Positions 562 through 39,122 of a stretch of DNA of 64,000 nt are shown here, in pieces (positions within the stretch are counted from its first letter, which is position 1; every line of letters begins with the position of its first letter). The stretch is from Thalia democratica (taxonomy: Eukaryota), in NCBI GenBank assembly GCA_965202585.1, contig OZ241830.1, positions 26,350,001 to 26,414,000 of the forward strand, in the 5' to 3' direction. A model generated the notes under the pieces. The model had not been told where the DNA came from and searched no databases. It saw only the letters and a program-made list of their open reading frames with translations. The translations under genes were made by a program, and so were the position numbers.

Positions 562-3500
562 ATGATGGCAACAACGAACTGCTTTGACCCACTTCTAGCA
601 GCAGGAAACAGTTTTATGACCAACCAACCGTTAACTTCCGGAATAAGTCAACCGTGTAAGATATATGACGTCACAAATCAACAAAACTTTTCAGCTACAA
701 ATGGTCATTACATTAATGGTAACACATTGAATTTTTCGAACGGTATAATAGATTATTCGTTGTTAAATTCGGATTTCAATGACAATCAGGTTTGATTTGG
801 TATAAAAAACTTATAAACAGCTACTAAATTAAATAGAATTTATTGAAATTTATTTTATTGAATATATTTTTCTCTTCGGATTTAGGGTGTAGCCTTAAAA
901 AAACAATAGTGACCTCATATAAATATATTAAAAAAGGCTTCTTATAAAATTGTAATAAAAATAACGAACTGTTTTATAAACTTTATCAAGTTTTATAATG
1001 AAAATTTCGTTAATCTTTCTAGGTAGCTGTACAAACTGCTATCAACGCAGGCAAAATTCATCAAAATCTGCAGCTGCAAAGCTTCCAGCAATACCTACCT
1101 GCAATAGGGAACCCAGAAAGTAGAGCAAACTACCAGCAAATTACTTTAGCCAACACTCACAAGTCAGTGCAAAATGACTATCAAACACAACAAAAGAACA
1201 ATCTTGCTGTTGTTAACCAACAACAAATGCAGATGTTCCAGCAAAATGTTAATGACAAGTGTTACAACACAAGTTCTGTACAAAATCAAAATGTCAACCT
1301 AGGACTTGGGCAACATCAGTTTGCACAACAACCACAAATACAACAAGGTCAGCAGCATATTCCGTTGGTTCAAAATAACCAAACAAATACATTTTTGTTG
1401 AGTTTTATTCTTGAAAAACTAAAAAGTGTAACCTTATTTATTCTAACAGATCAAAAAAAAAGATATCCTCAGCAATACTTAATGCCACGAACTCACTCAC
1501 TTCATCAAACCAACGTGCAGAATAATGCTGGTATGAGCTTACACTTGAATTTTAAATTAGTATCTAAAAATTATTTATTTGCTTTTGTTAACAGACCTGA
1601 TAGCTGTACAACATAGTGGTGACCCTTTGCTAGTAAACAACAGACGAAAGGTAATAAAACAGACAGTTTTGTATTTAACTGGGAAATCGATCATTTTTAT
1701 GTACAAACTTTTTTTTTAGATTAGTGAAGCTGTGCTTTCAAGCTCAAACATTAAGAATTTTAATTTTGAATCATCTGACGGTGAAAGACCAGGACAGTAA
1801 GGATGTTTTATTTCTTAGAGCATTTACGACTTCTAGTAAATATACTCATTAACTCTAATATATAAAACTTTTATTTTTTATTAGAACAAAAATAAAGAGA
1901 GTAAAAAGTTTTGTATTATTTTTTTACAAACATGCGCATCAAATTTGAAATATGTTATAACTCCTTTTAGGACTCGTGTGAAATTTACAAGACTGCAGTT
2001 TGAAATTTTGGAGGCGTCTTTCAAGAAAAGTCAAAATCTTAAAAATGGCAGAAAACTTTTCATTTCCGAGATGACTGGACTTACTGAAAATCAAGTTGTG
2101 GTAAGTAAAAAACGAGTTTGTTTATTTAATTTAATCAAAATATAATTTATTACACTTAGTTGTAATATAAACATCGTCGAAAGATATTGACAGTACGAAA
2201 TTATAAAGAAAAAGTAGATGTATAAAAACTAGATGTAATAAATAAAAATTTGTTCTAGAACTGGTTTAACAACAAACGGTCAAAACTTATTAGAATTGGC
2301 AAAAGGCTGCCAGCTAGGAGGTTCATAAAAATGAAAGGTTAGTTTGACTTTATTGAAGTAAAGTAGTCAGTAGTGTATTGAAATATAATTTAGCAATACA
2401 TAAATATATAAAATACAATTTCTTTTAACAGACGGAGTAGTTGGAATAAACAATGTTGTAACAATGGTAGATGTAAGTTAACTATTAAAAAATAGAAACC
2501 AAATAAAAAGCTTTTTTTTTTTTGACCTTAATTTAATTTTTTTGTATAGATACTACTTTTAAAAATTATTTTAGAAATACAGTACAATACGAATATATAT
2601 ACAATTAAATTAACTTTATATCTTAAAAGTAATGGAAACATGTTTAAAATTATAATTTCATAGCAAGTACTACCATAAAAAAGTAAAAATTTAAACTTAA
2701 AAACTTCTAAATTAAAAAAGTTAAAGATACGCTGTAAAAAAATGACTAAAAATTTTAGCACCCAAAAGACAGTGCGAGTGAAAAAATAGTAGATCAGAAC
2801 TTATATGAAAACCATAAGGATTACAGTAGAGAAGGGCAATCTTCAAAAGATAGCTCTAACAAGATGAGAAAGTAAGTTTTGGGAAAATTTAACTTTAAAA
2901 GAAATGTAAACAAATAAATATATATTATTAATGAAGTGCAATCACATATTTAAAAAACTTTTGAATACTAAGTTACACGCAACTATGAGCTTAACAGCGC
3001 CGACGCGTAACAGAGAAGATACGTAAGTGACGAAAAATGTTCTCATTCTGTTTTATTTTTATATAATTAGTTTTCTGTGTTTTAAACACTACCGCATATT
3101 TTAATATAATAAACAACAATATTTGAAGTATTTTAAATACAGTCGTACCCGCTATGACGTCATTAAGCGTTACATCTGATCATTTTGTAGTAACAAAAAA
3201 AAAACAAGATAAAATTTTATCACTTAAACTAATTTAAATGATAGGCTACGCATATGTACAGCTTTAACATACTCTGAAACTAAAAAATTTTATAATATTA
3301 CTAAACTGTTAGGCAGAGGATAACGCTCAATTTCGACCAGTTGGAGATTTTGGAAGATTTTTATAATTTCACCAGCTGGTATCCTATGGTTGATCAGATT
3401 GAAAAACTTGCAAAAAGGAGTAAATTGTCTTGTTATGAAGTGAAGGTAAATTATTAACTATTATCTGTCAGCTATATAATAAAGATACTATAAAATAAAA

Positions 3501-4472
3501 TTAGATTATATCAGATATAAATTTAAGAAAAGTATTAAACTGTATTAACCAATCCAGCTATGACGGTCAGTTTTTATTTTGTGTTAAGACAGTTTTTTCA
3601 GATAATTTCATTTCTCGGTTCATAATATGAAAATACTTTTTCTACTTTAATGAACAATAAAAATGAGTTTAACAATTGGAACTTAAGTTTCTGTAGAAAT
3701 GTTACAACTTTAATTTTAGATAAAAATAGGTTAAAGAAACAGATAAAGCTGAAAGTTTATTTCTAATACAAAATACTTTTTTTTACGTAAATTTAACTAC
3801 TTTTTTTAATAAATTTTTGCATGAAATGTGTTAGTAACATTAATTACATAATCGCAGATTGACAGTCCGTTCAACGGTGAAACTTATTAATTGTATCAAT
3901 TTGTTATAAATAGTTTTCAATATAAGAATTTTCAATATGAATATGTTCTTTTGCTTAATGTAATTTAATTAAATAATAAAATTAGTTATAGTAAGATATT
4001 CGGTGCAAATTTATTAAGATATAAAAATCCTATAATCTTAAAATTTTTATATACAAAACATTAGTGATCGTTCATTTATAAATTCATAATAGTTATTCTG
4101 AAATGATATTTAAATTATTAAAACCTACACAATCATAACTAACCATCACTTTATAATGTTTACCAAAGTTATTTAAACTTTTATACAAAAATCTCTGATA
4201 AAAAGTATTGATCGCTGCTTCAATCTTTCTTTTTAATATATTTGAAAAACTTAAAAAGAGCCTAAAAAAAATAATTAAAAATACTTGTTCAACCTTGTTT
4301 GAATGACGTATATGTTTCTGTTCTGCAGAAATCTAATATTATACATTATTTAAGTACTTACAAAGTTTTTCAACAGAATTGGTTTCAAAACCGACGCAGA
4401 AAAAACAGAAAATGTGGAATTGAAATTAACAAATTAGTTGATAGGAAAAGAAAACTTCCGTTTGATATGTGA
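562..4472 (+). CDS. Double-homeodomain transcription factor, paralog 1 (452 aa, 11 coding exons)
   Basis: Exons 562-789, 1023-1347, 1450-1530, 1595-1650, 1720-1796, 1971-2100, 2259-2337, 2432-2472, 2759-2871, 3313-3445, 4377-4472. All introns are GT..AG with compatible phases, total 1359 nt and no internal stop. HD1 = PGQTRVKFTRLQFEILEASFKKSQNLKNGRKLFISEMTGLTENQVV|NWFNNKRSKLIRIG. HD2 = MRKQRITLNFDQLEILEDFYNFTSWYPMVDQIEKLAKRSKLSCYEVK|NWFQNRRRKNRKCG. Every junction has a counterpart in the paralog at 35399-39122. N-terminal exon boundaries are less certain than the HD exons. Confidence 0.9.
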
Positions 4473-6321
4473 TAAAACACGAAAAAGTTTATATACGTTT
4501 CGTTTATATCACTAGACAGTATACTTTAGCACTAACTTTCTCTTCTGAATTATACAAGTTAAACGAAACTTTACAAAAAATTTTGTTAACAAGTTTTCTA
4601 TAACTTTATCAAAATTAGGTCAATGGTTGACGTTAAGAAAAAAAATTAACAATGATTATATATTGTTCTACATATTTTTCACGGTTATAGAGTAATTATA
4701 AAAAAGTATATTAATTATTAATATTTAATAAGTAATAATTAATTATTAATAATAATTTAAATTTTAGTGGGTAAAGTTAATCTTTGAATATATTTTTTTG
4801 AGCTAAAAAATCTAATATAGCTGAAATAACAAAACTTATATAACTATTTATACCCAATATATAATGATTAAAGCTTTCTTGTTAAACAATACTTTTTTAA
4901 CTTTGAATCGTTAGTTAATTAAATTAAATTTATCATCGTTAGTTATTAAATTAAATTTATCTTATTTTTCAGTTCTAAATCTAAGCTGTTTAAAGTTATT
5001 GCAACTGTTGAATATGCATTTACTGCTTTGTCTTATTTTTCTTGAGTTATTATATATACAAAAAAGTAATAAATTCTCCACGTAAAAATTGTTAAAAAAA
5101 TTTATTAATAAAATTTTCTGTATTATGATAAAAGTTTACAGCTGTAGTTTTTATTTTTAATGGTTTCGACTAAGAATGAGTTTTAACAAAGTTTTAATAT
5201 AATTAGTATTAAACTTCAAATAATTTTTTTTTAAGTCATTGCATCGCGCATTTAACTACAAATCGTTGTTGAACAAAATATAGTTTGTTGAAGTATGCTT
5301 TATGAAACAAGTATAAAGAGTTTTATAGAAAAGTATAAAATAATAAATAAAATTTATAAATATTTGTAATATTTTAAATGCTAAAGATTTAGTACTAAAC
5401 AATGTAAACTAAAAAGATATAAGTATTGCCTAAAATTTATAAATTAAATTAACTTGTATAACATGTTATTGGTTTTAAAACTAAAAACAATAACAAAACT
5501 ATACACAGAAGAAAGCAACACTAAAATTTTTATGATTAGTTTTTGTTGTCTAGGAAGCCTACAAAAACTTAACTGAACAGTTAAAAAGTTTTTAAAGATA
5601 TTTAATTCGTTAAAGAACGAGGGAGGTTGCTGTGCATTATATTTTTCAAAGTTATTTTAACTTGGTTGCATCTGATCTGTTTTATACTATTATCTGTATA
5701 CCGTTTTTTGGTAGTAAGGCGGTATCAAGAAGCAAAAACTGTTTTGATGGTGTTTATAGTTATAAAGTAATAAAAATAAATAGTTACTTAAAAACAAAAA
5801 AAAAAAAATTTTTTTTAATTTTAAACGTATGTTTTATCACGCTGTGGCACAATAGCTAATTTAAGCGTAAGCGTTTCAAATATATTTTAAAAGAAAAACT
5901 TTATTTATTTATTTAATTATTAATACATTTATTTAACGACAAAAAAAAAGACACTAAAAATATCTGGTCCTAGGACCTAGGTGCACAAACAACATTCGGT
6001 AATCTCGATAAACTTTTAACGTCTTGTCCGGGACAAACTTTTTAAAAACTTGTAAATGTTAGCATATATTATATTTATCTTAGGTATCTTTAATTTAAGA
6101 TTTAAAAACAAGTTTAAAACCAGCAAGAGTTCTATTTTATTTTAAAAACTCGCTTTTAAAAAACACTGTTTTCTTTAAAAAAATAAAGACTTAGTATCAT
6201 CTATTGAAAAAAAATATACCCTAAAAGATTCACAGAGTTTAAAAGTATAAACAGTTTTCATTAAAAGTTCTTTAAAAAAATTCGTTTAAGTCCAAAAGAA
6301 AAAGTAGACTACAATATAAGT

Positions 6322-6707
6322 TTATAATTGAAAAACTACAACGAAGTACTTGGAACAAGATAAAGTGCAAAATAAACAAATATTTGTCTTGCTTATACTT
6401 TGCACAGATTTTTAACACTACATAAGTCCGAATCACAGCAGTTATATTCATATAGTAAGTGATGAAGACGACATATTCCTAGTTTTTACAGTATAAAATA
6501 TTAGTACAACTCATCATTTTGATATTCTCCTGCTCGGTCCATTTTAAACATAGTAATTGCACAAAAACCTGAAGTATTTTCATTATATATGATGCAATTG
6601 ATTCAGAAATGTTCTCATAACTTGCATTAATTATGTATAGAACTCTTGTCTAGCAGAGCTACTAAAAACCAACATAGAACAATTAGAAATGTAATTAAAG
6701 ATCCCAT
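6322..6707 (-). pseudogene. Ly6/uPAR-like three-finger pseudogene (type C, copy 1)
   Basis: ATG at 6707 gives signal peptide MGSLITFLIVLCWFLVALLDKSS. Remnants GFCAI, SCTNILYCKN, CCDSDLCS and GPI-like tail SVQSISKTNICLFCTLSCSKYFVVVFQL* are spread over several frames with stops. The 386-bp length matches the intact genes. Confidence 0.75.
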
Positions 6708-8963
6708 AAAGTGCTTAGTTTTAGAAAAATATAAAACATGCGGCGCATATAAATTGTTAGATATTTTTTTATCAATTTACTTTGTACGAAAATTATATTA
6801 ATAATCTTACAAACTGGAAAGCAACTGGTTTTTATAACATTCTTTTTGAAAAAGTATTTATTTAAGATTTTTTCAGTTCAGAGACTTTAAGCAACGGCCT
6901 TAAAAATGTATGCTTATAATCTTTATATATAAGGCCAACTTGTTTGTTTCTAAAACAAGGCTGCTTATTGAAGTAATAAAAAGTTGCATTAGTTCCTTAA
7001 CAAATTTTATTTGCATACAAAATGTTTTATTATGTACTACTCAAATATTATTTGTAAATAAAATTTAAAAAGCCTGAATTTAAGTTAAATTGGCTTCTAG
7101 TTGTATGTAGTAGGCTTACACTGATCATTATATAAGTTTGATGCAGGCATTATTTTGGTTAAAAGTATCAAGTCAGTTTGTTAAAAGTTTAATGTAAACA
7201 AATAATACGACTTAGCTAAAAAATTAGTTTTTAACACAAAAACAATAGTTTTAAAATCAAAAGTACTAACATAAAATAAACTTTTGACCATAAATTGATA
7301 AAATCTTTTATACAATTAATATTGTTAATATGAAAATTATCGTTTAAAAACTTTAGCTATACGTTTTACCATTTCTCGCTTATATGTTTATACACAACTT
7401 TGAATTAATTTATTGTTTATCGGAAATAACAAATAAATTGAGCACAGTAAAATGTAATGCTAAATATTTAAAATATAACCTAATTATTTAAACAGTTAAG
7501 TGTCTGTAAAATACAGTTAATTGTTAAAGACGATAACAGCAGTAGTGTATTCCTAAATAAAACTCTATATCAAGAAAATTGTTTTGTTAAAACAGCAAGC
7601 ATTGCAAGAAAATTATATTTCAACAGATATTAATGAATCCAAGGATGTGATATTATCAATTTAGGTAGTTTACTAATAAGATCGATTACTTATACGGTAG
7701 ATTTTTGATTTTTTAAGAAATAAATGCTGTCACTTATAATAGTTAAGAAAAGTTATAATAAGACTTGGAACATTTAAATCAACTACGTATCTTCCTTATT
7801 TAAAAAAGTGAGCTACTATGACATAGATATTTTCAAAACATTATATTTCCTCTTATTTAGTTTAAAGATTGTTTTTAATTATTGATTTCTAAAAAAAATT
7901 GTTATTATACTTCAATCATAAGTGATGCTATTGACTACATTGTTCGTTTTTTTTTGTTATATTTAACTTTTTGTAAGGATTTTTAGAACTTTTTCTATTC
8001 GTACTTTAATCATGCGACTTGTAAAACTTATGTCTTTAAGTTGTTTTTTTTGGAATCTAAAATAAGCATGGTTGTTTAGGAGTACTTATTTTTACTTATT
8101 GTTTATGTTTAAATTTGTTATTTATAGTAAAATTTACGTTAAATATTAAAAAAGTATGTCTTATAACTCAATTATGCAGAGTAAAAGGTGTACTAAACGA
8201 GAAATACATAATTAAAAAAAAGATACTTTAGAGTAAAAATTGTTATAATTGATAACAATTTAAACATTCTTTTAATTTATAAAAACTTTAGTTGTTTAAA
8301 ATATTTATATTACAATTTAAGCGTTTACCTCCTTTATGCTTAGCTCCCTGTTGTTAGAAAAAATTATTTATTGCATGAACGTAAGTTGATTGAATCTACT
8401 TGCTAGAAGTTTAACAATTAAGCTTATACACTATAGCTAATTACGGTAAAAGTAATTAATTCTATTCAATATAATTTACAAAACTCTTGACACAAAAGAA
8501 CTACAGACTATACTGTAATAATAAAAGTTAAGTTAAACTAATATTTATAACCTTGAAAGCAGCTTGTTAAACTACTAAACTTTTTTTTAATATACCTAAT
8601 TACGTTTTTCCTTGTTAAACTTCTTTGATTGCAAATCTATTTACTTATTTATTTAAGTCTAAGTCAAAAAGTAAACAAACAAAATAAATAATTTACAAAC
8701 TTGCAAAAACTAATATATTTTAATCTTTTTTTTTTCATCACAAAAGTTTAAATATTTTCTTAACAAGAATTTAATTTTATAACCAACTTCGTTTACTAAA
8801 AGACTTTGTTGTAGTTGAACTAAATACTTTATTACTAAAATTCGTGTGCTTATATTTGATAGTGTTACAATATTAGAATTTTTAAAAGTTACACAGATTT
8901 AAAAATATAAAAGTTGACAGTTAGTTAAGCTGAAAAAAACATTAAAATAATAAAAGTTGACAG

Positions 8964-9356
8964 TTAATTGAGGTGAAAAAATATTAAAATAATAAAAGCT
9001 GAAATATATAGTAAAAAACAAAAGTTTGTTTTGTTTATACTTTGTGCAGAACTTTCAAGATTGCATAAGTCTTTCTCACAGCAATTTATCTCAAATTTCA
9101 TGCCGTATAACTCATGTTTAGAAACTCCTGGCTCCTTACAAAACTCAGTATCAGTGCAACCCAGATCTGTACAAATATCTTCTCCACACTTGTCAAACGT
9201 GCCGCTTTTAAACTTGTAGATTGCACAAAAGTCTGAACTATATCCTGGACAAGTGTATTTTGTTAAATCAGAATGATTCCCAAAGTAGCACTGTAGACTG
9301 AAAGATCCGTTAAATAAACAACTAAAAATAACTAAACTTAATGTCAAAGTCTTCAT
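8964..9356 (-). CDS. Intronless GPI-anchored Ly6/uPAR-like three-finger protein A1 (130 aa)
   Basis: Signal peptide MKTLTLSLVIFSCLFNGSFS, then LQC, 10 mature Cys ending CCEKDLCN, small-residue omega region (ESSA), spacer and C-terminal hydrophobic tail FCFLLYISAFIILIFF. Confidence 0.88.
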   Translation of the reverse strand: MKTLTLSLVIFSCLFNGSFSLQCYFGNHSDLTKYTCPGYSSDFCAIYKFKSGTFDKCGEDICTDLGCTDTEFCKEPGVSKHELYGMKFEINCCEKDLCNLESSAQSINKTNFCFLLYISAFIILIFFHLN

Positions 9357-12570: not shown

Positions 12571-13118
12571 TTATATATCAACTATTAAAAAACTATAAAG
12601 CACACAGCTAATATTAAGTTATTTTTCTCCTTACTTAACTTATACGAAAGCTGTTCACATACTCCTACTAAATAAAAAACAATCGGTTTATATAACCCTT
12701 GTTAGGTTAAATTTGTTTTCCAGATTTTTACAGTTTGAGACCACAAATAAGGTCTATTTACATCTTAATTTGCGTATAACTTTTCACACTTATATAAACT
12801 ATTTGAGTTTAAACAAAAAGTTGTCATGTCCATTGTGAAGTAAAATTATTTCTGTTACTGCCTTAAATAGAACTATGTGCTTATAACATTTCTTATTTCT
12901 GTTATTTTTGTTTAAACAACACTACTTTTTGCGTAAAATTTGCTCCTAAACTAATCCATCTACTTTCGGAAAAAATTAGGAACTTGTTTTTTTTCGTCAT
13001 AAAAAGTATATCATAAAATTTGTATACATTTCATAAATACAAACCGTCTTCTTTTAAAGTTTTTAGATAGCTTTATTTAAGTACTCAAGAACTACAAGAG
13101 TACAATTGTAACTGACAG

Positions 13119-13495
13119 TTAAATTGAAAAACACATAGGAATAACATAAAGTGCAAAAAATAAACAAATATTTGTGATGCTTATATTCTTCACAGACTTT
13201 TAACATAACATAAGTCCGAATCACTGCAGTTATATTCATACAGTTAATAATGAATATGACATTTTCCTGGTTTTTACAGTAAAAACTATTAGTACAACTT
13301 ATCATCGTGCTATTCTCATGTTACTTTCAATTTGACCACTTTTCAACATAGAAATTGCACAAAAACCTGAAGTATATTCATTATATATGATGCAATTGAT
13401 TCAGGAATGTTCTCATAGCTTGCATTAATTATGTATAGAACTCTTATCTAGAAGAGCTGCTAAAAACCAAATTGAAATGTAATTGTAGATTTCAT
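13119..13495 (-). pseudogene. Ly6-like pseudogene (type C, copy 2)
   Basis: Homologous to 6322-6707: MKSTITF.., GFCAISMLKSG, SCTNSFYCKN, CSDSDLC and tail SVKNISITNICLFFALYVIPMCFSI*, with frameshifts and stops. ORF 13063-13305 is an out-of-frame read-through of it. Confidence 0.72.
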
Positions 13496-16063
13496 AACGT
13501 GCTTAGTTTTAGAAAATCATAAAGTATACGGCGCATATAAATTGTTAGATATTTTTTTATCAATTTACTTTGTACGAAAACTATATGAACAATATTACAA
13601 ACAGGAAAGCAACTGGTTTCTATAATATCCTTGTTGAAAAAGGAATTATTTAAGATTTTTTTTAGTTTAAAGACTTTAAGCAACGGCTTCAAAAAAAATG
13701 TATGCTTATAATCTTTATTTTTTAGGCCAACTTGCTTGATTTTAAAACAATGGTGGTAATTGAATTAATAAAAAATTGCATTACTTCTTTAATAAGTTAT
13801 ATGTTTACAAAATTCTCATTATCCATTTTTTTAAAATACTACTAAAGTATTATTTGCAAATAAAATTTAAAAACCTGAATTAATTTATTAATTTTCTTCT
13901 ACTTATATGTGGCTTATACTGTGTATTTTGATTATTTTCAAGCATACATTTATATTGGTTAAGAGAAGCAGGTATCAAACAAGTCCGTTTGTGTTTTTTT
14001 TAAAACAGTACGATTAAGCTGAAAACTAATTTTTAACAAATAAACAATACTTTTTGAATCTTGAGTATTAACAAAAAAAACTTTCGACCACAAATAAATA
14101 AAGTATTTGAATAAAAACTATTTTTGTAAATATAAGTATTTTTGTTTAAGAATTTTAGCTATAAATTTTACCGTTCATAGCGTACAAGTTTATACACAAC
14201 TCTGAACTAACTAATTGTTTATAAAAAAAATATATTTATTAAAATACAAAAGAAAGACCTAATAATAAAGCTAAGAAAAGCTGTCTAATAGTTTCAATAT
14301 ACATTGCATTAATTATGTATAGAACTCTTATCTAGAAGAGCTGCTAAAAACCAAATTGAAATGTAATTGTAGATTTCATAACGTGCTTAGTTTTAGAAAA
14401 TCATAAAGTATACGGCGCATATAAATTGTTAGATATTTTTTTATCAATTTACTTTGTACGAAAACTATATGAACAATATTACAAACAGGAAAGCAACTGG
14501 TTTCTATAATATCCTTGTTGAAAAAGGAATTATTTAAGATTTTTTTTAGTTTAAAGACTTTAAGCAACGGCTTCAAAAAAAATGTATGCTTATAATCTTT
14601 ATTTTTTAGGCCAACTTGCTTGATTTTAAAACAATGGTGGTAATTGAATTAATAAAAAATTGCATTACTTCTTTAATAAGTTATATGTTTACAAAATTCT
14701 CATTATCCATTTTTTTAAAATACTACTAAAGTATTATTTGCAAATAAAATTTAAAAACCTGAATTAATTTATTAATTTTCTTCTACTTATATGTGGCTTA
14801 TACTGTGTATTTTGATTATTTTCAAGCATACATTTATATTGGTTAAGAGAAGCAGGTATCAAACAAGTCCGTTTGTGTTTTTTTTAAAACAGTACGATTA
14901 AGCTGAAAACTAATTTTTAACAAATAAACAATACTTTTTGAATCTTGAGTATTAACAAAAAAAACTTTCGACCACAAATAAATAAAGTATTTGAATAAAA
15001 ACTATTTTTGTAAATATAAGTATTTTTGTTTAAGAATTTTAGCTATAAATTTTACCGTTCATAGCGTACAAGTTTATACACAACTCTGAACTAACTAATT
15101 GTTTATAAAAAAAATATATTTATTAAAATACAAAAGAAAGACCTAATAATAAAGCTAAGAAAAGCTGTCTAATAGTTTCAATATACATTGCATTAATTAT
15201 GTATAGAACTCTTATCTAGAAGAGCTGCTAAAAACCAAATTGAAATGTAATTGTAGATTTCATAACGTGCTTAGTTTTAGAAAATCATAAAGTATACGGC
15301 GCATATAAATTGTTAGATATTTTTTTATCAATTTACTTTGTACGAAAACTATATGAACAATATTACAAACAGGAAAGCAACTGGTTTCTATAATATCCTT
15401 GTTGAAAAAGGAATTATTTAAGATTTTTTTTTAGTTTAAAGACTTTAAGCAACGGCTTCAAAAAAAATGTATGCTTATAATCTTTATTTTTTAGGCCAAC
15501 TTGCTTGATTTTAAAACAATGGTGGTAATTGAATTAATAAAAAATTGCATTACTTCTTTAATAAGTTATATGTTTACAAAATTCTCATTATCCATTTTTT
15601 TAAAATACTACTAAAGTATTATTTGCAAATAAAATTTAAAAACCTGAATTAATTTATTAATTTTCTTCTACTTATATGTGGCTTATACTGTGTATTTTGA
15701 TTATTTTCAAGCATACATTTATATTGGTTAAGAGAAGCAGGTATCAAACAAGTCCGTTTGTGTTTTTTTTAAAACAGTACGATTAAGCTGAAAACTAATT
15801 TTTAACAAATAAACAATACTTTTTGAATCTTGAGTATTAACAAAAAAAACTTTCGACCACAAATAAATAAAGTATTTGAATAAAAACTATTTTTGTAAAT
15901 ATAAGTATTTTTGTTTAAGAATTTTAGCTATAAATTTTACCGTTCATAGCGTACAAGTTTATACACAACTCTGAACTAACTAATTGTTTATAAAAAAAAT
16001 ATATTTATTAAAATACAAAAGAAAGACCTAATAATAAAGCTAAGAAAAGCTGTCTAATAGTTT
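13420..16063. repeat. Tandem triplication of an 884-bp unit, essentially identical copies
   Basis: Units start at 13420, 14304 and 15188 (ttgcattaattatgtatagaac). Both junctions carry the same 9-nt filler caatataca. The only difference noticed is an 8-T versus 9-T run in copy 3. Confidence 0.95.
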
Positions 16064-17623
16064 AAACATGTAATAATCGGCATAACTAAAAAGTTGTTAC
16101 ATACAATGGCAGCAGTAGTGATAATGACAGCCGTAGTTGAAAATAAAATTCAAGATCATGCAAATTGTTTTTCAGAACAACATGCATTGCAAAATGAATA
16201 TATTTAAACAGAGGGTAATGAATCATTGGATGTGATATTATCTTTATTGGTTTATCTAATAGTATTCTAGGTGACTTATACACTAAGTTATTGGTTTTTT
16301 AAGGTAAATTGTATACGACAGAAGTAAAAGCTGTCTTTAATTTTAATTTTGAAAAGTTATAATCATAAAGTTAATTTTATTTTTATTCAAAACAGCAAAA
16401 CCACGTAAGGAGAAATCTACTATTACGTATATATGTTTTTGAAACATTTTGTTGCATAGTTTACTGATTGTATTTAAGTATTGCATTCTAGACAATTTTT
16501 TGTAACAACTCATCAAATTTAAAAATTACTATTTTTTATATTAATCACAATTGATACTTCAACAATTAGTGATGCCACTTTGAACACATTCTTCGTTTTT
16601 ATAAAGTTTAAGGTTTATATACAAACTTTATAATCATTAATTTTTCATACTATAATCATGCGCTTAGTAAAATTTATGTGTATGAGTAATTGTTTAGGAA
16701 TCTACATTACTCATACTTTTTTTTTTGTTTTTTGTGTATTGGTATCTTTATGTTTTATTTTTTAAATATAGTAAATGTATGTGAAAAGAATATACATTTG
16801 TCTTTTTACTCAAGGTTGTAGGGTAACGAGTGAATACTCAACGAGAATTACATAGTTGAAATAGTATACATGACAGAAAAATTTAATTCATATTTTTTTT
16901 CTTTTGACATTGTTACACAATTATAAAAAGTTGTAGTTGTTAAAGTAGTTTGAACTATCATTAAAGCGTTTTCCTATTTCTGAATTACAAATACTTCCTA
17001 TACTTCCTGATTTATGTAAACCTCATTGTTATTGTTATTACTCTATTTTTTGCGTAAACGTTTGTTGATTGAAACTATATGCTAGAAATTTAAGAATTAA
17101 GCTTTTACGTCACATGTAGTTATGACAAAAATTACTTATTCTACCTAATTACAAAACTCTTAACACAAAAGCTACAGACTATACTGTAATAACAAGCAAT
17201 TAGGTTAAGGTAATTAAAAAAATAAAAACTAAATGCAACTTAAAAAACTACTAAACTTCTATTTTGCACTATACAATATATTTTTTTTTTTAATTTAACT
17301 AATTAATTATTTCAAGTCTGTTTATTCATTTAGTTTAGTTTAATAATAAATTATTATAAAGTTTAATTAATAAAATAAAATATAAAAAAACAAGTAAACA
17401 ACAAGTAATCAAATTTAAACACTCACGTTTTTTATATAAGCCACAAAACTTTAAATATTTTGTTTAATAATAAACTGCTTTATTGAACATTCTTTTTACT
17501 AAACTTAAATAAAGACTTTGTTGTAATTTAACTATTTTTTTTTTCTCAAATATATTTTTCAATGTTTAAGAGTGTTATAAAAATTACAATTTAAAAAATT
17601 CAACATAATTAAAAAAAGATTAA

Positions 17624-24658: not shown

Positions 24659-25051
24659 TTAAGCTAAAAAATAGTACAAAATATAACAAACTAAAACAAA
24701 AATAAAAAAACAAAAGTTTATCTTGTTCAAATTTTCAGCTGCTGAACTTTCGAGATTGCATAAATCTTCGTCACAGCAATCTACAGTTAGTTCCATGCCG
24801 TAAAATTCTTGTTCTGCAGTTCCTGGCTCTTTACAAATATCTTTATTAGTGCAACCCCATTCAGTACAAACATCTTCTCCGCATTCAAAAAATGTGCCGT
24901 TTTTATATTTGTAAATCACACAAAAATCCGTACTATGGTATGGACAAGTTTTGCCAGTTATATAAGAAGAATTCCCAATGTAGCACTGTAGACTGGAAGA
25001 ATCTCTAACCAAACAACATAAAACAACGAAAGTTGTAATCAAAGTTTTCAT
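24659..25051 (-). CDS. Intronless GPI-anchored Ly6/uPAR-like three-finger protein A3 (130 aa)
   Basis: Signal peptide MKTLITTFVVLCCLVRDSSS, 10 mature Cys with the same spacing as A1, CCDEDLCN, ESSAA and a hydrophobic tail. Confidence 0.88.
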   Translation of the reverse strand: MKTLITTFVVLCCLVRDSSSLQCYIGNSSYITGKTCPYHSTDFCVIYKYKNGTFFECGEDVCTEWGCTNKDICKEPGTAEQEFYGMELTVDCCDEDLCNLESSAAENLNKINFCFFIFVLVCYILYYFLA

Positions 25052-28352: not shown

Positions 28353-28742
28353 TCATATCATTAAGTAGTAAAATACAAAAACAAAAACTACAAAACAAAA
28401 TTTTGTCTTGTTCATACTCTGTGCAGAATTTTCAAAACTTTCAAGATTGCATAAGTCTTTGTCACAACAACTTATTGTGAATTTCATGTCGTGAAATACA
28501 TGTTTAAAAGTTCCTGGCTCTTTACAATAAAAACTATCAGTGCAACCCATTTCAGTGCATATCTTTTCATCGCAATCATCAAATGTTCCGCTTTTATACT
28601 TGTAGATCGCACAGAAGTTTAAATCGTAGTCTGAACAACTTATATCAGATAATTCAGTTAAATTTCCGTTGTAGCACTGTAGACTGGAAGTATCGCTAAA
28701 CAAACAACATAAAAAAACTAAAGTTGTAATCAAAGTTTTCAT
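28353..28742 (-). CDS. Intronless GPI-anchored Ly6/uPAR-like three-finger protein A4 (129 aa)
   Basis: Signal peptide MKTLITTLVFLCCLFSDTSS, 10 mature Cys, CCDKDLCN, NSAQ and hydrophobic tail FCFVVFVFVFYYLMI. Confidence 0.88.
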   Translation of the reverse strand: MKTLITTLVFLCCLFSDTSSLQCYNGNLTELSDISCSDYDLNFCAIYKYKSGTFDDCDEKICTEMGCTDSFYCKEPGTFKHVFHDMKFTISCCDKDLCNLESFENSAQSMNKTKFCFVVFVFVFYYLMI

Positions 28743-35398: not shown

Positions 35399-38300
35399 TT
35401 AACACATATCGAACGGAAGTTTTCTTTTTCTATTTACAAGTTTGTTGATTTCAATTCCACACTTTCTATTTTTTCTTCGTCGGTTTTGAAACCAATTCTG
35501 TAAAGTGATCAATATTTAAAAAATAAATATTTTTAAGTAGATTAATTTCCTAAGTTTAATTTTTTACTTTAACAGCAACTTATATTCTGTTTAAAATAGA
35601 TTACATAAGTAGCTAAAAAGTTCTTTAAGGCCTTACTTAAAATTGTAAATATGTTTATATGAAAAAATTGAAAGTGAAACCTTCAGGTTTAAATACATAC
35701 ATTTATTACCTTAGAATAAATAGTTTTAAAAATTATACTAAAATACTGCTAAACTAAACTTTGTAGGTTGTAAATACAGAACATATTTTTCTACACTTAA
35801 GAATGAAACAGTATAAATTTATTTACAAGCTCAACCTCATATTAACTTTTATATATATGCTGATACATATACTATTAAAAACAAAATAAAACTTATATCT
35901 TTTTGATAAATAAAAGTTTTAGATTTATGTACTTTTTTACCTAAATTTAAAAATCAAGACATGAAATGAGTTCTAAGAAACTAAAGTACAAACATTTGTT
36001 AAAGTAGTAGTTATAAAAATTTAAGTTTTAAAAAGTTAACATTCAATGAAATAAGGAAAATTTTTAAAGGTGCATTACGTATCTTAAAACATATTTTCTG
36101 GCGAGTCTGGTTTGTTTTGCTCTATATTGTTGTTAATTTTTAATTAACCGTGATATAAACAAGTTTTGTTTTTTATAGTATCGTTATAGTAGTTTGAAGC
36201 TACGGATAAAAGTTCATATATTACCTTCACTTCATAACAAGTCAATTTACTCCTTTTTGCAATTTTCTCAATCTGATCAACCATAGGATACCAGCTGGTG
36301 AAATTATAAAAATCTTCCAAAATATCCAGCTGGTCGAAATTGAGCGTTATCCTTTGCCTAACAGATAAAAGTATATGAAAATATATTAGTTTGTACAGAT
36401 GCGTAAGTGTAAAATTAGTTAAAGTTATGAAATATAACATATTTTTTTTTTTAGTTTTAGGCTCAATGAGCGACGTGTGATGACGCCATAGGGGGTGTAG
36501 TTTAAGTTACCTCTAATGCTGTTGTATTTTACAACAAAATAGCAATTATGTTAGGTATTGCAAAAATAAGTTTAACATGAATATTTAAATAGATTTTAAA
36601 GGTATTTGTATTTACAGTAATTTCCTAACATTATTGTGCATCACCACTACTTAACTCATAACGGCAAGTACATTAGTTCTTAATATAATGTTTGTGTGTT
36701 TTAAAAGGACAATCTTTATAAATGTGTTACCAAATTCATTTTTTAATAATATAAACTAACTTTCTAAGTTTTTTTAAACTATCTTCGGCTGGTTGTTCTT
36801 CAGTATTGTAATCTTCATGATCATCATAATCAGCATGGTCTTCTAACTTTTCAACCGTAATATCTTCGTTATGCTGAATTTTCATTAACAGTTTACAATG
36901 CTTTTACAAAACATTTTTATCATTTTTTTAGTAAAAAAACGTTATATTTTAAAAGTTGCTAAAAACTAATAAAAATGGTTTTTTAATAATTTTTGTTTAC
37001 TTACACTAATTCTTATTTACTTTTAGTACACAAAAATAGAAAAATCATAATACTTCACGTACTTTTACTACAGTAACAGCATCCGTTTTTTGAAATACTT
37101 GGTCTGTTGGAAATATTATTTAAAAATTAATTGTAGTTATATAATTTTGTTTAATAATTAAAAGAAAACAATTATTGTTTTATTTTAAAGATTAGACTAA
37201 TTATATAAACAATTTATTAACAAACAAGAAATTTAAAACAAACTTTGCTTCTTTATACATTTACCAGCAGGTAATCCTTTGCTCATTCTAATAAGCTTTG
37301 ACCGTTTATTGTTAAACCAGTTCTGTAAAGAACTTTAAAATTTTTAATACTCTAAAAAAACTTTATTTAGTTTTTTAAATGGCTATTTAAATATTTTCAG
37401 ATATACTTTTAAATAAAAAAACTCGTTTAATTGTTAAAAAACTCGTTTATTGTTAAACCAGTTCTATAAAGAATTTAAAAATTTAATATAGTCTACAAAT
37501 ATATGTTTATTTAAACACCTCTAACTTGTTTTTTACAGTGCAAGATTTTTTCATATATACTTACGAAACAAACAAACTCGATTTTTTCTTACCACAACTT
37601 GATTTTCAGTGAGTCCAGTCATCTCGGAAATGTCAATTTTTCTGCCATTTTTAAGGTACTGACTTTTTTTAAAAGATGCCTCCAAAATTTCAAACTGCAG
37701 TCTTGTAAATTTCACACGAATCCTATAAATTTTGTTACATTTTAAAACTAGTACGTTTATAAAATTTCATTTTTAAAACGTGCATAATTGTTTAAAATGC
37801 AAGAAAGTAATCTCTTACTGTCTCTTTTTATTACCAATGGATGTCTCGGAATAAAGTTTCTTGTCTTTTGAGCTTGAAGGCGCGTCTTCACTGATCTAAA
37901 AAATAAACCTGTATTTGGAGCTTACTAGCTTACAAATAAAATACGAAATAGTTGATTTAGTTACCTTTCGTGTGTTGCTTACTAGAATAGGATTACCACT
38001 TTGTTGTACAGCTATCAGATCTGTAAACAAAAACAACTCATGACTTAAGATATTAATTAAAAACTAAGTTTAAGCTTATACCAGTATTATATTGCATGTT
38101 TTTACAATGAAGTGAGTGGTTCTGTTGCATAACATTCTGCTGTGGATATCTTTGATTTTGACCTGTTAAAAAAAAAAAGATGCACTTTTGAGTTTTTAAA
38201 TCATGAAACTTAACCCATTTGTATTTAGCTACATATTATGTGCTACTTGATAATGCTGCTGACCTTGTTGTATTTGTGGTTGTTGTGCAAACTGCTGTTG

Positions 38301-39122
38301 CCCAAGTGCTAGGTTAACATTTTGATTTTGATATTGTACAGCGTTTGTGTTGTAATAATGGTCAACATCATTTCGCTTAAACATATGAGCTTGTTGTTGA
38401 TTATTAACAATAGAAGTGTTGTTTTGTTGTGTTTGATAGTCATTTAGCACCGTATTGTAAGTATTGGTTAGATTCATTTGCTGATGAGTTGTTTTCTTTA
38501 CTGGGTTCACAATTACAGGTTGGTTTTGCTGGTAAATTTGCAACTGTAGATTAAAATTATCTATTATTGCTATTTCAACAGTGTTAACATATACCTATGC
38601 AAAATAACAAAGTCTTTATATAAATAAATAAAACAAAAGTTCTATTGAGTTTATTGCTTTACAGTTGTTTCTCGCTTACATCGTGTAGAAACAATTGTAA
38701 AGTAATAAACTCAATAGAACTTTTATTTTTTTAACTGTATAAAGGCTCCTTAAGTTTGAAACTTTCTTGAATTTTTTTGTTTAAATCTCAAAATTTCAAC
38801 AAAGTCTTTTGTAAAAAACTTTGCTAAAGTTTATAAAGCAAATAGTAAATGTTTAAAAACTTTTATGAATGTTTGTTGTGAAAAGTGTATATCAAAAAAA
38901 AACCTGATTGTTATTGAAATCGGAATTTAACAGAGAATAATTCATTTTACCAATAGAAAACTTCAAACTGTTACTATTAGTGCTGTGAAGATTTGGAGCG
39001 AAAAAGTTTTGTTGTTTAGTTACGTCGTATATTTTTTGACTTATTCCGGAAATTAACGGTTGGTTGGTCATAAAACTTTTTCCTGCTGCTAGAAGCGGAT
39101 CATAATAATTTGATGTTGCCAT
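35399..39122 (-). CDS. Double-homeodomain transcription factor, paralog 2 (452 aa, 11 coding exons)
   Basis: Exons 39122-38904, 38594-38264, 38162-38082, 38020-37965, 37895-37819, 37722-37593, 37322-37244, 37103-37063, 36873-36761, 36357-36225, 35497-35399. All GT..AG, total 1359 nt, open frame. HD1 = KRQIRVKFTRLQFEILEASFKKSQYLKNGRKIDISEMTGLTENQVV|NWFNNKRSKLIRMS. HD2 differs from paralog 1 at three conservative positions. Ends RKRKLPFDMC*. Confidence 0.9.
37443..37463 (-). other. Candidate 21-nt micro-exon (duplicated acceptor plus NWFNNKR codons) in intron 6 of paralog 2
   Basis: tttatAG|aactggtttaacaataaacga|GTtttt is a copy of the exon 7 acceptor region, in frame (phase 0/0). Use as an exon is not demonstrated. 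Confidence 0.4.
38635..38724 (+). other. 90-nt hairpin (38-bp stem, 14-nt loop) in intron 1 of paralog 2
   Basis: AAAAGTTCTATTGAGTTTATTGCTTTACAGTTGTTTCT / AGAAACAATTGTAAAGTAATAAACTCAATAGAACTTTT. The only two non-Watson-Crick pairs are G-U on the + strand. Confidence 0.85.

Follow-up and report, generated by a model that had tools for sequence, protein, structure and literature searches.

What is encoded by a gene with two homeodomains that differ from each other and from their described relatives at several key residues: a working transcription factor, a member of a known family, or a decaying copy? The question is raised by a 64,000-nucleotide stretch of contig OZ241830.1 (positions 26,350,001 to 26,414,000; hereafter the window), which is very AT-rich (21-29% G+C) and in which an initial annotation had marked a divergent double homeodomain at 1789-4418. 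We conclude that the gene, here called A, and its inverted paralogue B within the same window are probably functional double-homeodomain transcription factor genes of a pelagic-tunicate family. The double homeodomain, with asparagine at position 50 (N50) of the first domain (HD1) and a second domain (HD2) of 61 residues, is confirmed.

Gene A occupies 562-4472 of the forward strand and, as modelled from open stretches and splice sites read from the DNA, consists of 11 exons joined by canonical GT-AG sites and encoding 452 residues. The span first marked takes in only the 3' half; the start of the gene, at 562, is about 1.2 kb further upstream. An N-terminal region of 253 residues (29% Q+N) precedes HD1 (residues 254-313), which is separated from HD2 (residues 375-435) by a 61-residue linker rich in charged residues. 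A donor for exon 2 at 1401 was rejected in favour of 1347 after comparison with B and with L016, an environmental contig carrying an orthologue (see below), in which a stop comes after the corresponding donor (G|GTCAGC). Contigs derived from short reads of two public DNA runs of one sample agree with 2086-2590 at every base, which rules out a base error in the N50 codon.

The gene reading and Pfam bear out the description of HD1 as a 60-residue domain with N47 and N50, to which S54 can be added: its diagnostic residues are R5, F8, Q12, L16, F20, N47, W48, F49, N50, N51, K52, R53 and S54. HD2 has R5, L8, Q12, L16, Y20, Y25, P26, N47, Q50, N51 and R53, and HMMER alignment to Hesx1, Prrx2 and Pax3 agrees with the annotation in placing exactly one extra residue in the loop between helices 1 and 2 (loop 1; near codon 3371-3373). 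Both domains hold the core and contact residues L16, F/Y20, W48, F49, N51 and R53, and the first half-exon of each lies above the curated PF00046 cut-off of 22.9 bits (32.4 bits, E 7.9e-8, for HD1; 24.6 bits, E 2.2e-5, for HD2); the family member P0001, which is contiguous, reaches 79.6 bits in two stretches. Each domain is interrupted by a phase-2 intron inside codon 3 and by a phase-0 GT-AG intron between codons 46 and 47 (158 nt in HD1 and 931 nt in HD2). The initial annotation had named a 46/47 intron as typical of the PRD class. All family loci have the same two intron positions in both domains.

Structure prediction, which had been proposed as a check, was run with AlphaFold2 (AF2) on residues 250-435 of the paralogue P0001 with a small family alignment, standing in for A's own spliced protein. 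The model predicts two three-helix domains (pLDDT 77-86) and a disordered linker, with five residues in loop 1 of HD1 versus six in that of HD2. Helix 3 of HD2 is modelled as long and as extending, with falling confidence, into the C-terminal tail, whose motif is conserved family-wide.

Gene A belongs to an inverted gene pair, which refines the initial picture of a single gene. An inverted repeat of the segment 285-4526 lies at 39393-35348 (72-91% DNA identity) and contains copy B (39122-35399, reverse strand), which has 11 exons like A, canonical splice sites and an intact frame of 452 residues. The homeodomains of A and B are nearly identical, whereas the linkers have diverged. The HD1 intron of B also contains a partial duplicate of HD1 exon b, sitting 141 nt upstream of the real exon and reading NWFNNKRVF and then a stop.

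Origin of N50 and predicted DNA recognition

The family was mapped by genome-wide half-exon searches and from fetched loci. It includes about 12 double-homeobox loci, five of them of the N50 type (A, B, C, D and D'). HD1 exon a of A is 79-95% identical in four other genomic loci; C lies 2.9 Mb from A on the same chromosome-scale contig, D is on another contig, and D' is a close copy on a 19-kb scaffold. At about seven more distant loci an HD1-type exon pair is followed 1-1.4 kb on by an HD2-type pair. The one-residue loop insertion that gives HD2 its 61 residues is present in every member (13 compared). The HD1 recognition helix of the distant members reads NWFQNxRAK (Q50), so N47 is family-wide and N50 is derived. 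Searched for as a pattern, the N50 exon gave eight genomic matches versus none in the control. Six of the eight are A, B, the partial duplicate in B, C, D and D'; the other two (L019 and L020), with no homeobox exon in their vicinity, were taken to be chance matches.

An alignment mixing exon pieces with full-length proteins was discarded because HD1 exons were misaligned onto HD2, and a cleaner one was used. In trees the N50 copies form one clade (support 1.0 with nucleotides, 0.96 with protein), and the HD1s are separated from the HD2s, each set forming a clade of its own (support 1.0); the combination of the two domains therefore has a single origin that predates the diversification of the family. 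The N50 clade is set apart by the fixed substitutions M13F, E44Q, Y46V, Q50N and A54S in HD1 and, in HD2, by substitutions that include T47N. Positions 46, 47, 50 and 54 face the major groove. As reconstructed from these alignments, the trees show a single origin of N50 from Q50 by two base changes, accompanied in HD1 by Y46V and A54S and in HD2 by T47N. On this reconstruction N50 is a derived character, confined to a subclade of five loci and not shared by the whole family, a refinement of the initial annotation.

Copy C has B-like N-terminal exons and an A-like HD2 exon, a mixture that points to gene conversion between the three copies A, B and C. In its HD2 exon a (L001, G000:C6:23469001-23479000, at about 8390-8400) there is a run of six T residues where A has five. 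The frame is shifted as a result, and either C is a young pseudogene or the run contains a homopolymer error.

The nearest relatives of HD2 are probably single-homeodomain K50 genes. Those of a cluster near 13 Mb of contig C2 (L012), with a 61-residue K50 homeodomain, share exon boundaries and the one-residue loop insertion with the family HD2, and the helix 3 sequence of this cluster and of the environmental protein P0019 (TWFKNRRSK) resembles that of HD2. They differ in having one homeodomain only and K50 instead of Q50, and no HD1-type exon was found near the L012 homeodomain in its 10-kb locus. Homeobox amplification is massive genome-wide, with 870 first-look candidates. There are two long arrays of single-exon homeoboxes (G000:C6:69.83-70.22 Mb and G000:C4:36.18-36.71 Mb, with at least 11 and at least 13 copies) that have identical Pfam scores (60.3 bits) and a spacing of ~20-60 kb, and paired-homeobox clusters are present at C4:75.43-75.52 Mb and C7:50.9-51.8 Mb.

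The proteins are built of four parts, namely a conserved N-terminal motif and, after it, a Q/N-rich region of ~250 residues that is likely to be activating or condensate-forming, HD1, a disordered linker of ~61 residues, and HD2 with a conserved basic tail that would prolong the recognition helix. Both domains keep R5, W48, F49, N51 and R53 and presumably still bind DNA, and together they may read a bipartite site, as the two homeodomains of DUX4 do. Which bases are preferred at the 3' end of the site depends on homeodomain positions 47, 50 and 54 (PMC3460184). HD2 (N47/Q50/R54) would read a TAAT-like half-site, and HD1 (N47/N50/S54) would have a shifted 3' preference, because bases 4-6 are set by these three positions. 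As its most likely function, the protein is predicted to act as a sequence-specific transcription factor on a bipartite site, with HD1 retuned in the N50 clade. The possibly novel bipartite specificity suggested by the initial annotation becomes more plausible given the fixed changes at DNA-facing positions 46, 50 and 54 of HD1 and 47 of HD2. The further proposal, that Y46V, Q50N and A54S in HD1 and T47N in HD2 make the N50 clade a retuned reader of a bipartite site belonging to no described homeodomain, is possible but doubtful.

Alternatively, HD1 of the N50 clade may no longer read DNA and may serve as a protein- or RNA-binding module or as a non-specific DNA clamp, leaving HD2 alone to provide specificity. 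Asparagine at position 50 is found in no Drosophila homeodomain class (Table 1 of PMC4901127), positions 2-3 of copy A are not basic and its position 25 is N, and five fixed changes cluster in HD1. The view that N50 is uncommon holds in that it is rare, but it is not unique, as it recurs in P0013, P0016 and P0020, unrelated environmental or database multi-homeodomain proteins (YYFNNKRTR, KWFNNQRRK) that are intact. HD1 moreover keeps R5, W48, F49, N51, K52, R53 and K55, purifying selection on it is strong (see below), and the changes on the DNA-facing side of helix 3 (46, 50 and 54) fit retuning better than loss. We consider a non-reading HD1 improbable and favour one that still binds DNA.

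Affinity to known homeodomains and probable independence from DUX

A profile of the first HD2 exon was searched against 1.84 billion representative proteins, giving 32 matches at E <= 1e-3. These are marine exon-sized open reading frames (ORFs), putative transcripts of the P0001 type, and unrelated multi-homeodomain proteins with scores summed over domains; no orthologue-like protein outside marine fragments was found among the 1.84e9 proteins. A homologue search with the HD2 exon-a ORF gave no candidates, and one with P0001 gave two close paralogues only. Among solved structures HD2 is closest to Hesx1, Prrx2, Pax3, ceh-37 (an Otx homologue), Gsc and Alx4 at ~30 bits, with PBX1 close behind, and its best named matches have E values of 5e-7 to 1e-5. 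HD1 best matches Engrailed, Dlx5, Msx1, DUX4, BarH and HoxA13, also at ~30 bits, with Pitx2 lower; matches of its profile to TAL effectors are spurious and come from a short TGLTxxxV motif. In the ESM Atlas the only leads, which were DUX-like, stayed below the threshold (0.84). No domain besides the homeodomain was found by Pfam (no PAIRED, OAR, SIX-SD, LIM, POU or other), and faint Homeobox_KN matches overlap the PF00046 match.

The likeness to PRD and PRD-like proteins (Hesx1, Prrx2, Alx4, Gsc, Otx/ceh-37) includes the phase-0 46/47 intron common to both domains; many genes of the PRD class have this intron, and each homeobox of DUXA is interrupted by an intron (PMC2211742). HD2 also shares Q50, Y25-P26 and WFQNRR with them. 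With respect to the S, Q or K at position 50 of the PRD class, HD2 has Q50, and HD1 has Q50 in other members and N50 in this clade. In contrast to PRD-like proteins, position 47 is N and not V or I, HD2 has L8 and one residue more in the loop, neither OAR nor another class motif is detected, and HD1 matches ANTP-type domains (En, Dlx, Msx) equally well or better. The domains do not fall within TALE, which has a three-residue insertion, there being no extra loop residue in HD1 and one in HD2, and one-residue insertions in loop 1 have arisen repeatedly (PMC4901127). Nor do they fall within SINE/SIX, with which only N47 is shared: Pfam finds no SIX domain, and position 50 is N or Q and not K.

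The searches lend support to the initial suggestion of a lineage-specific, unclassified family, in that the HD2 profile recovers only marine fragments of the same family and generic multi-homeodomain proteins, and in that named matches stay near 30 bits, leaning to PRD for HD2 and mixed for HD1. From its sequences the family appears to be restricted to pelagic tunicates, and it is best called an undescribed, putatively tunicate-restricted double-homeobox family of PRD-like affinity.

The mitochondrial COX1 gene of the assembly (G000:C1833:8315-9631; L021) reads TGA as tryptophan and AGR as glycine, with AGA and AGG aligning to invariant glycines of bovine COX1. This is the tunicate code, and the host is therefore a tunicate. 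Several COX1 fragments full of stops on a chromosome-scale contig (G000:C4:56.84-56.94 Mb) resemble mitochondrial DNA copied into the nucleus. DUX genes occur only in eutherians and go back to the single-homeobox sDUX (PMC9882399, PMC3004920). Since the host is a tunicate, the double layout is convergent and of independent origin, as had been proposed; the support for this comes by inference from the mitochondrial code, the eutherian confinement of DUX and a sequence identity to DUX proteins of 23-27%, the usual level between unrelated homeodomains.

The resemblance to DUX lies in the arrangement. DUX proteins (DUX4, DUXA, DUXB, DUXC) have two tandem homeodomains, as in A, B and the contiguous P0001 ORF, and the intron-containing DUX genes have an intron inside each homeobox, as here (PMC2211742). 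A Foldseek search with the two-domain model puts DUX, ZHX, DUXA and Crxos first at 17-27% identity; the likeness is confined to architecture, and phmmer scores DUX4 no higher than En, Dlx and Msx. The family is set apart from DUX by N50 in HD1, by the 61-residue HD2 and by the disordered linker of ~61 residues. The linker of DUX4 is short. With the tunicate mitochondrial code and this level of identity, descent from DUX is not indicated.

Clade-private double-homeodomain families are documented elsewhere (HOCHOB and in Dictyostelium) and are an expected mode of homeobox evolution (PMC4901127). The HOCHOB genes of Caenorhabditis, the double homeobox genes of Dictyostelium and mouse Crxos are likewise independent, clade-restricted inventions with two homeodomains. 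There is no sequence relationship to any of them, and Pfam HOCHOB gives no match; the family described here differs in keeping canonical DNA-contact residues together with PRD-type introns.

A fast-evolving orthologue of a described bilaterian family, either PRD-like (Hesx, Prrx, Otx) or a true DUX relative, would account for the 46/47 intron of the two domains, which DUXA and many genes of the PRD class also have (PMC2211742), for the PRD-class best matches of HD2 and for the Foldseek ranking of DUX, and tunicate genes do evolve fast. We nevertheless judge such an orthologue very unlikely: the best named matches reach only ~20-33 bits overall and are class-mixed for HD1, Pfam saw no family-specific flanking domain, no orthologue-like score occurs outside marine fragments among the proteins searched, and DUX is eutherian-only (PMC9882399) and as distant as noted above.

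Constraint and environmental relatives

The ratio of nonsynonymous to synonymous substitution rates (dN/dS) between A and B is 0.245 for HD1, 0.127 for HD2 and 0.39 for the whole gene. Between A or B and D it is 0.11-0.19 for HD1 and 0.09-0.14 for HD2, at a synonymous divergence (dS) of ~0.8-1.3 where synonymous sites are near saturation, and between A, B or C and an orthologue from Tara Oceans it is 0.07-0.15 at a dS of 0.67-0.88. As estimated from these substitutions, the ratios show the homeodomains to be under purifying selection.

The orthologue was reached by an exon-level ORF search, which found two ORFs of 57 residues on Tara Oceans metagenome contigs. Three contigs (L016-L018; 25% G+C) carry exons 1-9 of the orthologous gene in the same order, and the second HD1 exon reads NWFNNKRSKLIRKS behind an AG acceptor; the peptide NWFNNKRSK is thus found in these contigs as well as in B, C, D and D'. 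Their best genome matches, to A, B and C, are only 72-84% identical in DNA, so the contigs come from another species and N50 is therefore conserved between species. Two further Tara contigs (L014 and L015; P0010) contain at 1540-1776 an HD2-type exon 66% identical to that of A, in which a two-codon deletion removes the loop insertion and R5 and P26 are lost; from its sequence this is a degenerate or strongly diverged relative in another planktonic species. P0010 could not be linked to the N50 orthologue, as the contigs do not overlap.

Three Joint Genome Institute (JGI) contigs of 1.35-1.54 kb (P0001, P0043 and P0044) consist of complete, intronless Q50-type double-homeodomain ORFs with 16-30 nt of flank. 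They are 78-84% identical to locus L005 and have exon joins exactly as predicted for it. From their form we infer that they are environmental transcripts of a related species, and as aligned they confirm the exon junctions for the family.

Several observations weigh against a functional A and B. The search for public runs turned up two DNA runs of one sample and no RNA run with this gene, and among metagenome contigs neither the family profile nor a degenerate pattern for the spliced N50 46/47 junction of HD1 had a match. No spliced N50 transcript was found in metagenome or metatranscriptome collections. DNA binding, the spacing of the site and any effect of N50 are predictions. HD1 of copy A has N25 in place of Y25, and its N-terminal arm (PGQTR) is weakly basic. 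The decoy acceptor in B, at about 37463, would, if used, yield a protein cut inside HD1, and the 1-nt frameshift in HD2 of copy C points to some decay in the N50 clade. Finally, dS in the homeodomain exons of A, B and C is low and mosaic, and gene conversion may inflate the apparent constraint among these three copies.

The least probable reading is that of young pseudogenes, A and B being duplicates that are not expressed or are decaying, with frames not yet broken, which would suit the missing RNA evidence, the decoy in B, the frameshift in C, the degenerate HD2-like exon of P0010 (L014/L015) and the many homeobox gene births and deaths in the genome, but which is opposed by two intact 452-residue frames over 11 exons with canonical splice sites, by homeodomain dN/dS of 0.07-0.25 against copies (D and the Tara orthologue) at a dS of ~0.7-1.3, where neutral decay would have destroyed the frame, and by linkers that diverge while homeodomains and tail are conserved.

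Features of the window and significance

The exons of A and B and the partial duplicate within B are listed in Table 1. Between the two genes lie three single-exon ORFs of ~130 residues, all on the reverse strand (8964-9356, 24659-25051 and 28353-28742), two of which have weak, sub-threshold Pfam matches to CD59/Ly6 (E ~2e-3); they may encode small secreted proteins of the three-finger type. A repeat of ~1.1-1.2 kb is present once near gene A (6209-7717) and in about three tandem copies 6 kb further on (13001-16303), with 74-77% identity; it is not reported by Tandem Repeats Finder (TRF) because its period exceeds 500.

Table 1. Exons of genes A and B and the partial exon duplicate, in window coordinates
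Feature	Coordinates	Strand	Content and evidence
Gene A exon 1	562..789	+	ATG, conserved N-terminal motif; ORF and GT donor; 75% amino acid identity to Tara orthologue L016
Gene A exon 2	1023..1347	+	Q/N-rich; AG acceptor; phase-1 donor G|GTCAGC, placed alike in copy B and L016
Gene A exon 3	1450..1530	+	AG/GT sites; B, C and L016 keep frame
Gene A exon 4	1595..1650	+	AG/GT sites, conserved in paralogues and L016-L018
Gene A exon 5	1720..1796	+	Ends in HD1 codon 3, phase 2; donor CA|GTAAGG
Gene A HD1 exon a	1971..2100	+	HD positions 3-46 (helices 1 and 2, start of helix 3); PF00046 32.4 bits
Gene A HD1 exon b	2259..2337	+	Positions 47-60 and beyond, NWFNNKRSK; acceptor TTCTAG; N50 codon AAC at 2268-2270
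Gene A exon 8	2432..2472	+	Linker; AG/GT sites; 41 nt in A and B alike
Gene A exon 9	2759..2871	+	Linker, ends in HD2 codon 3, phase 2; AG/GT sites; homologous exon in L017
Gene A HD2 exon a	3313..3445	+	Positions 3-46, extra loop-1 residue near 3371-3373; PF00046 24.6 bits
Gene A HD2 exon b	4377..4472	+	NWFQNRRRK, conserved C-terminal tail, stop TGA; acceptor CAACAG
Gene B exon 1	38904..39122	-	Alignment to A, intact 452-residue model
Gene B exon 2	38264..38594	-	
Gene B exon 3	38082..38162	-	
Gene B exon 4	37965..38020	-	
Gene B exon 5	37819..37895	-	
Gene B HD1 exon a	37593..37722	-	93% identical to A; GT-AG sites
Partial HD1 exon-b duplicate in HD1 intron of B	37434..37473	-	Acceptor and first 20 coding nt, ~30 nt
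Gene B HD1 exon b	37244..37322	-	NWFNNKRSK, N50
Gene B exon 8	37063..37103	-	
Gene B exon 9	36761..36873	-	
Gene B HD2 exon a	36225..36357	-	61-residue type; 93% identical to A
Gene B HD2 exon b and stop	35399..35497	-	

Divergent, clade-private homeobox genes are common, and the value of one more such family is in that respect moderate. As a double-homeodomain factor it would be the third or fourth of independent origin, after DUX, HOCHOB and the Dictyostelium genes. Its Q50-to-N50 subclade, kept across paralogues and species, offers a compact natural experiment on the evolution of homeodomain specificity, and Q50 and N50 paralogues coexist in one genome and so are directly comparable. If the N50 clade is indeed a retuned reader, it would provide a natural example of a new transcription factor specificity arising after duplication.

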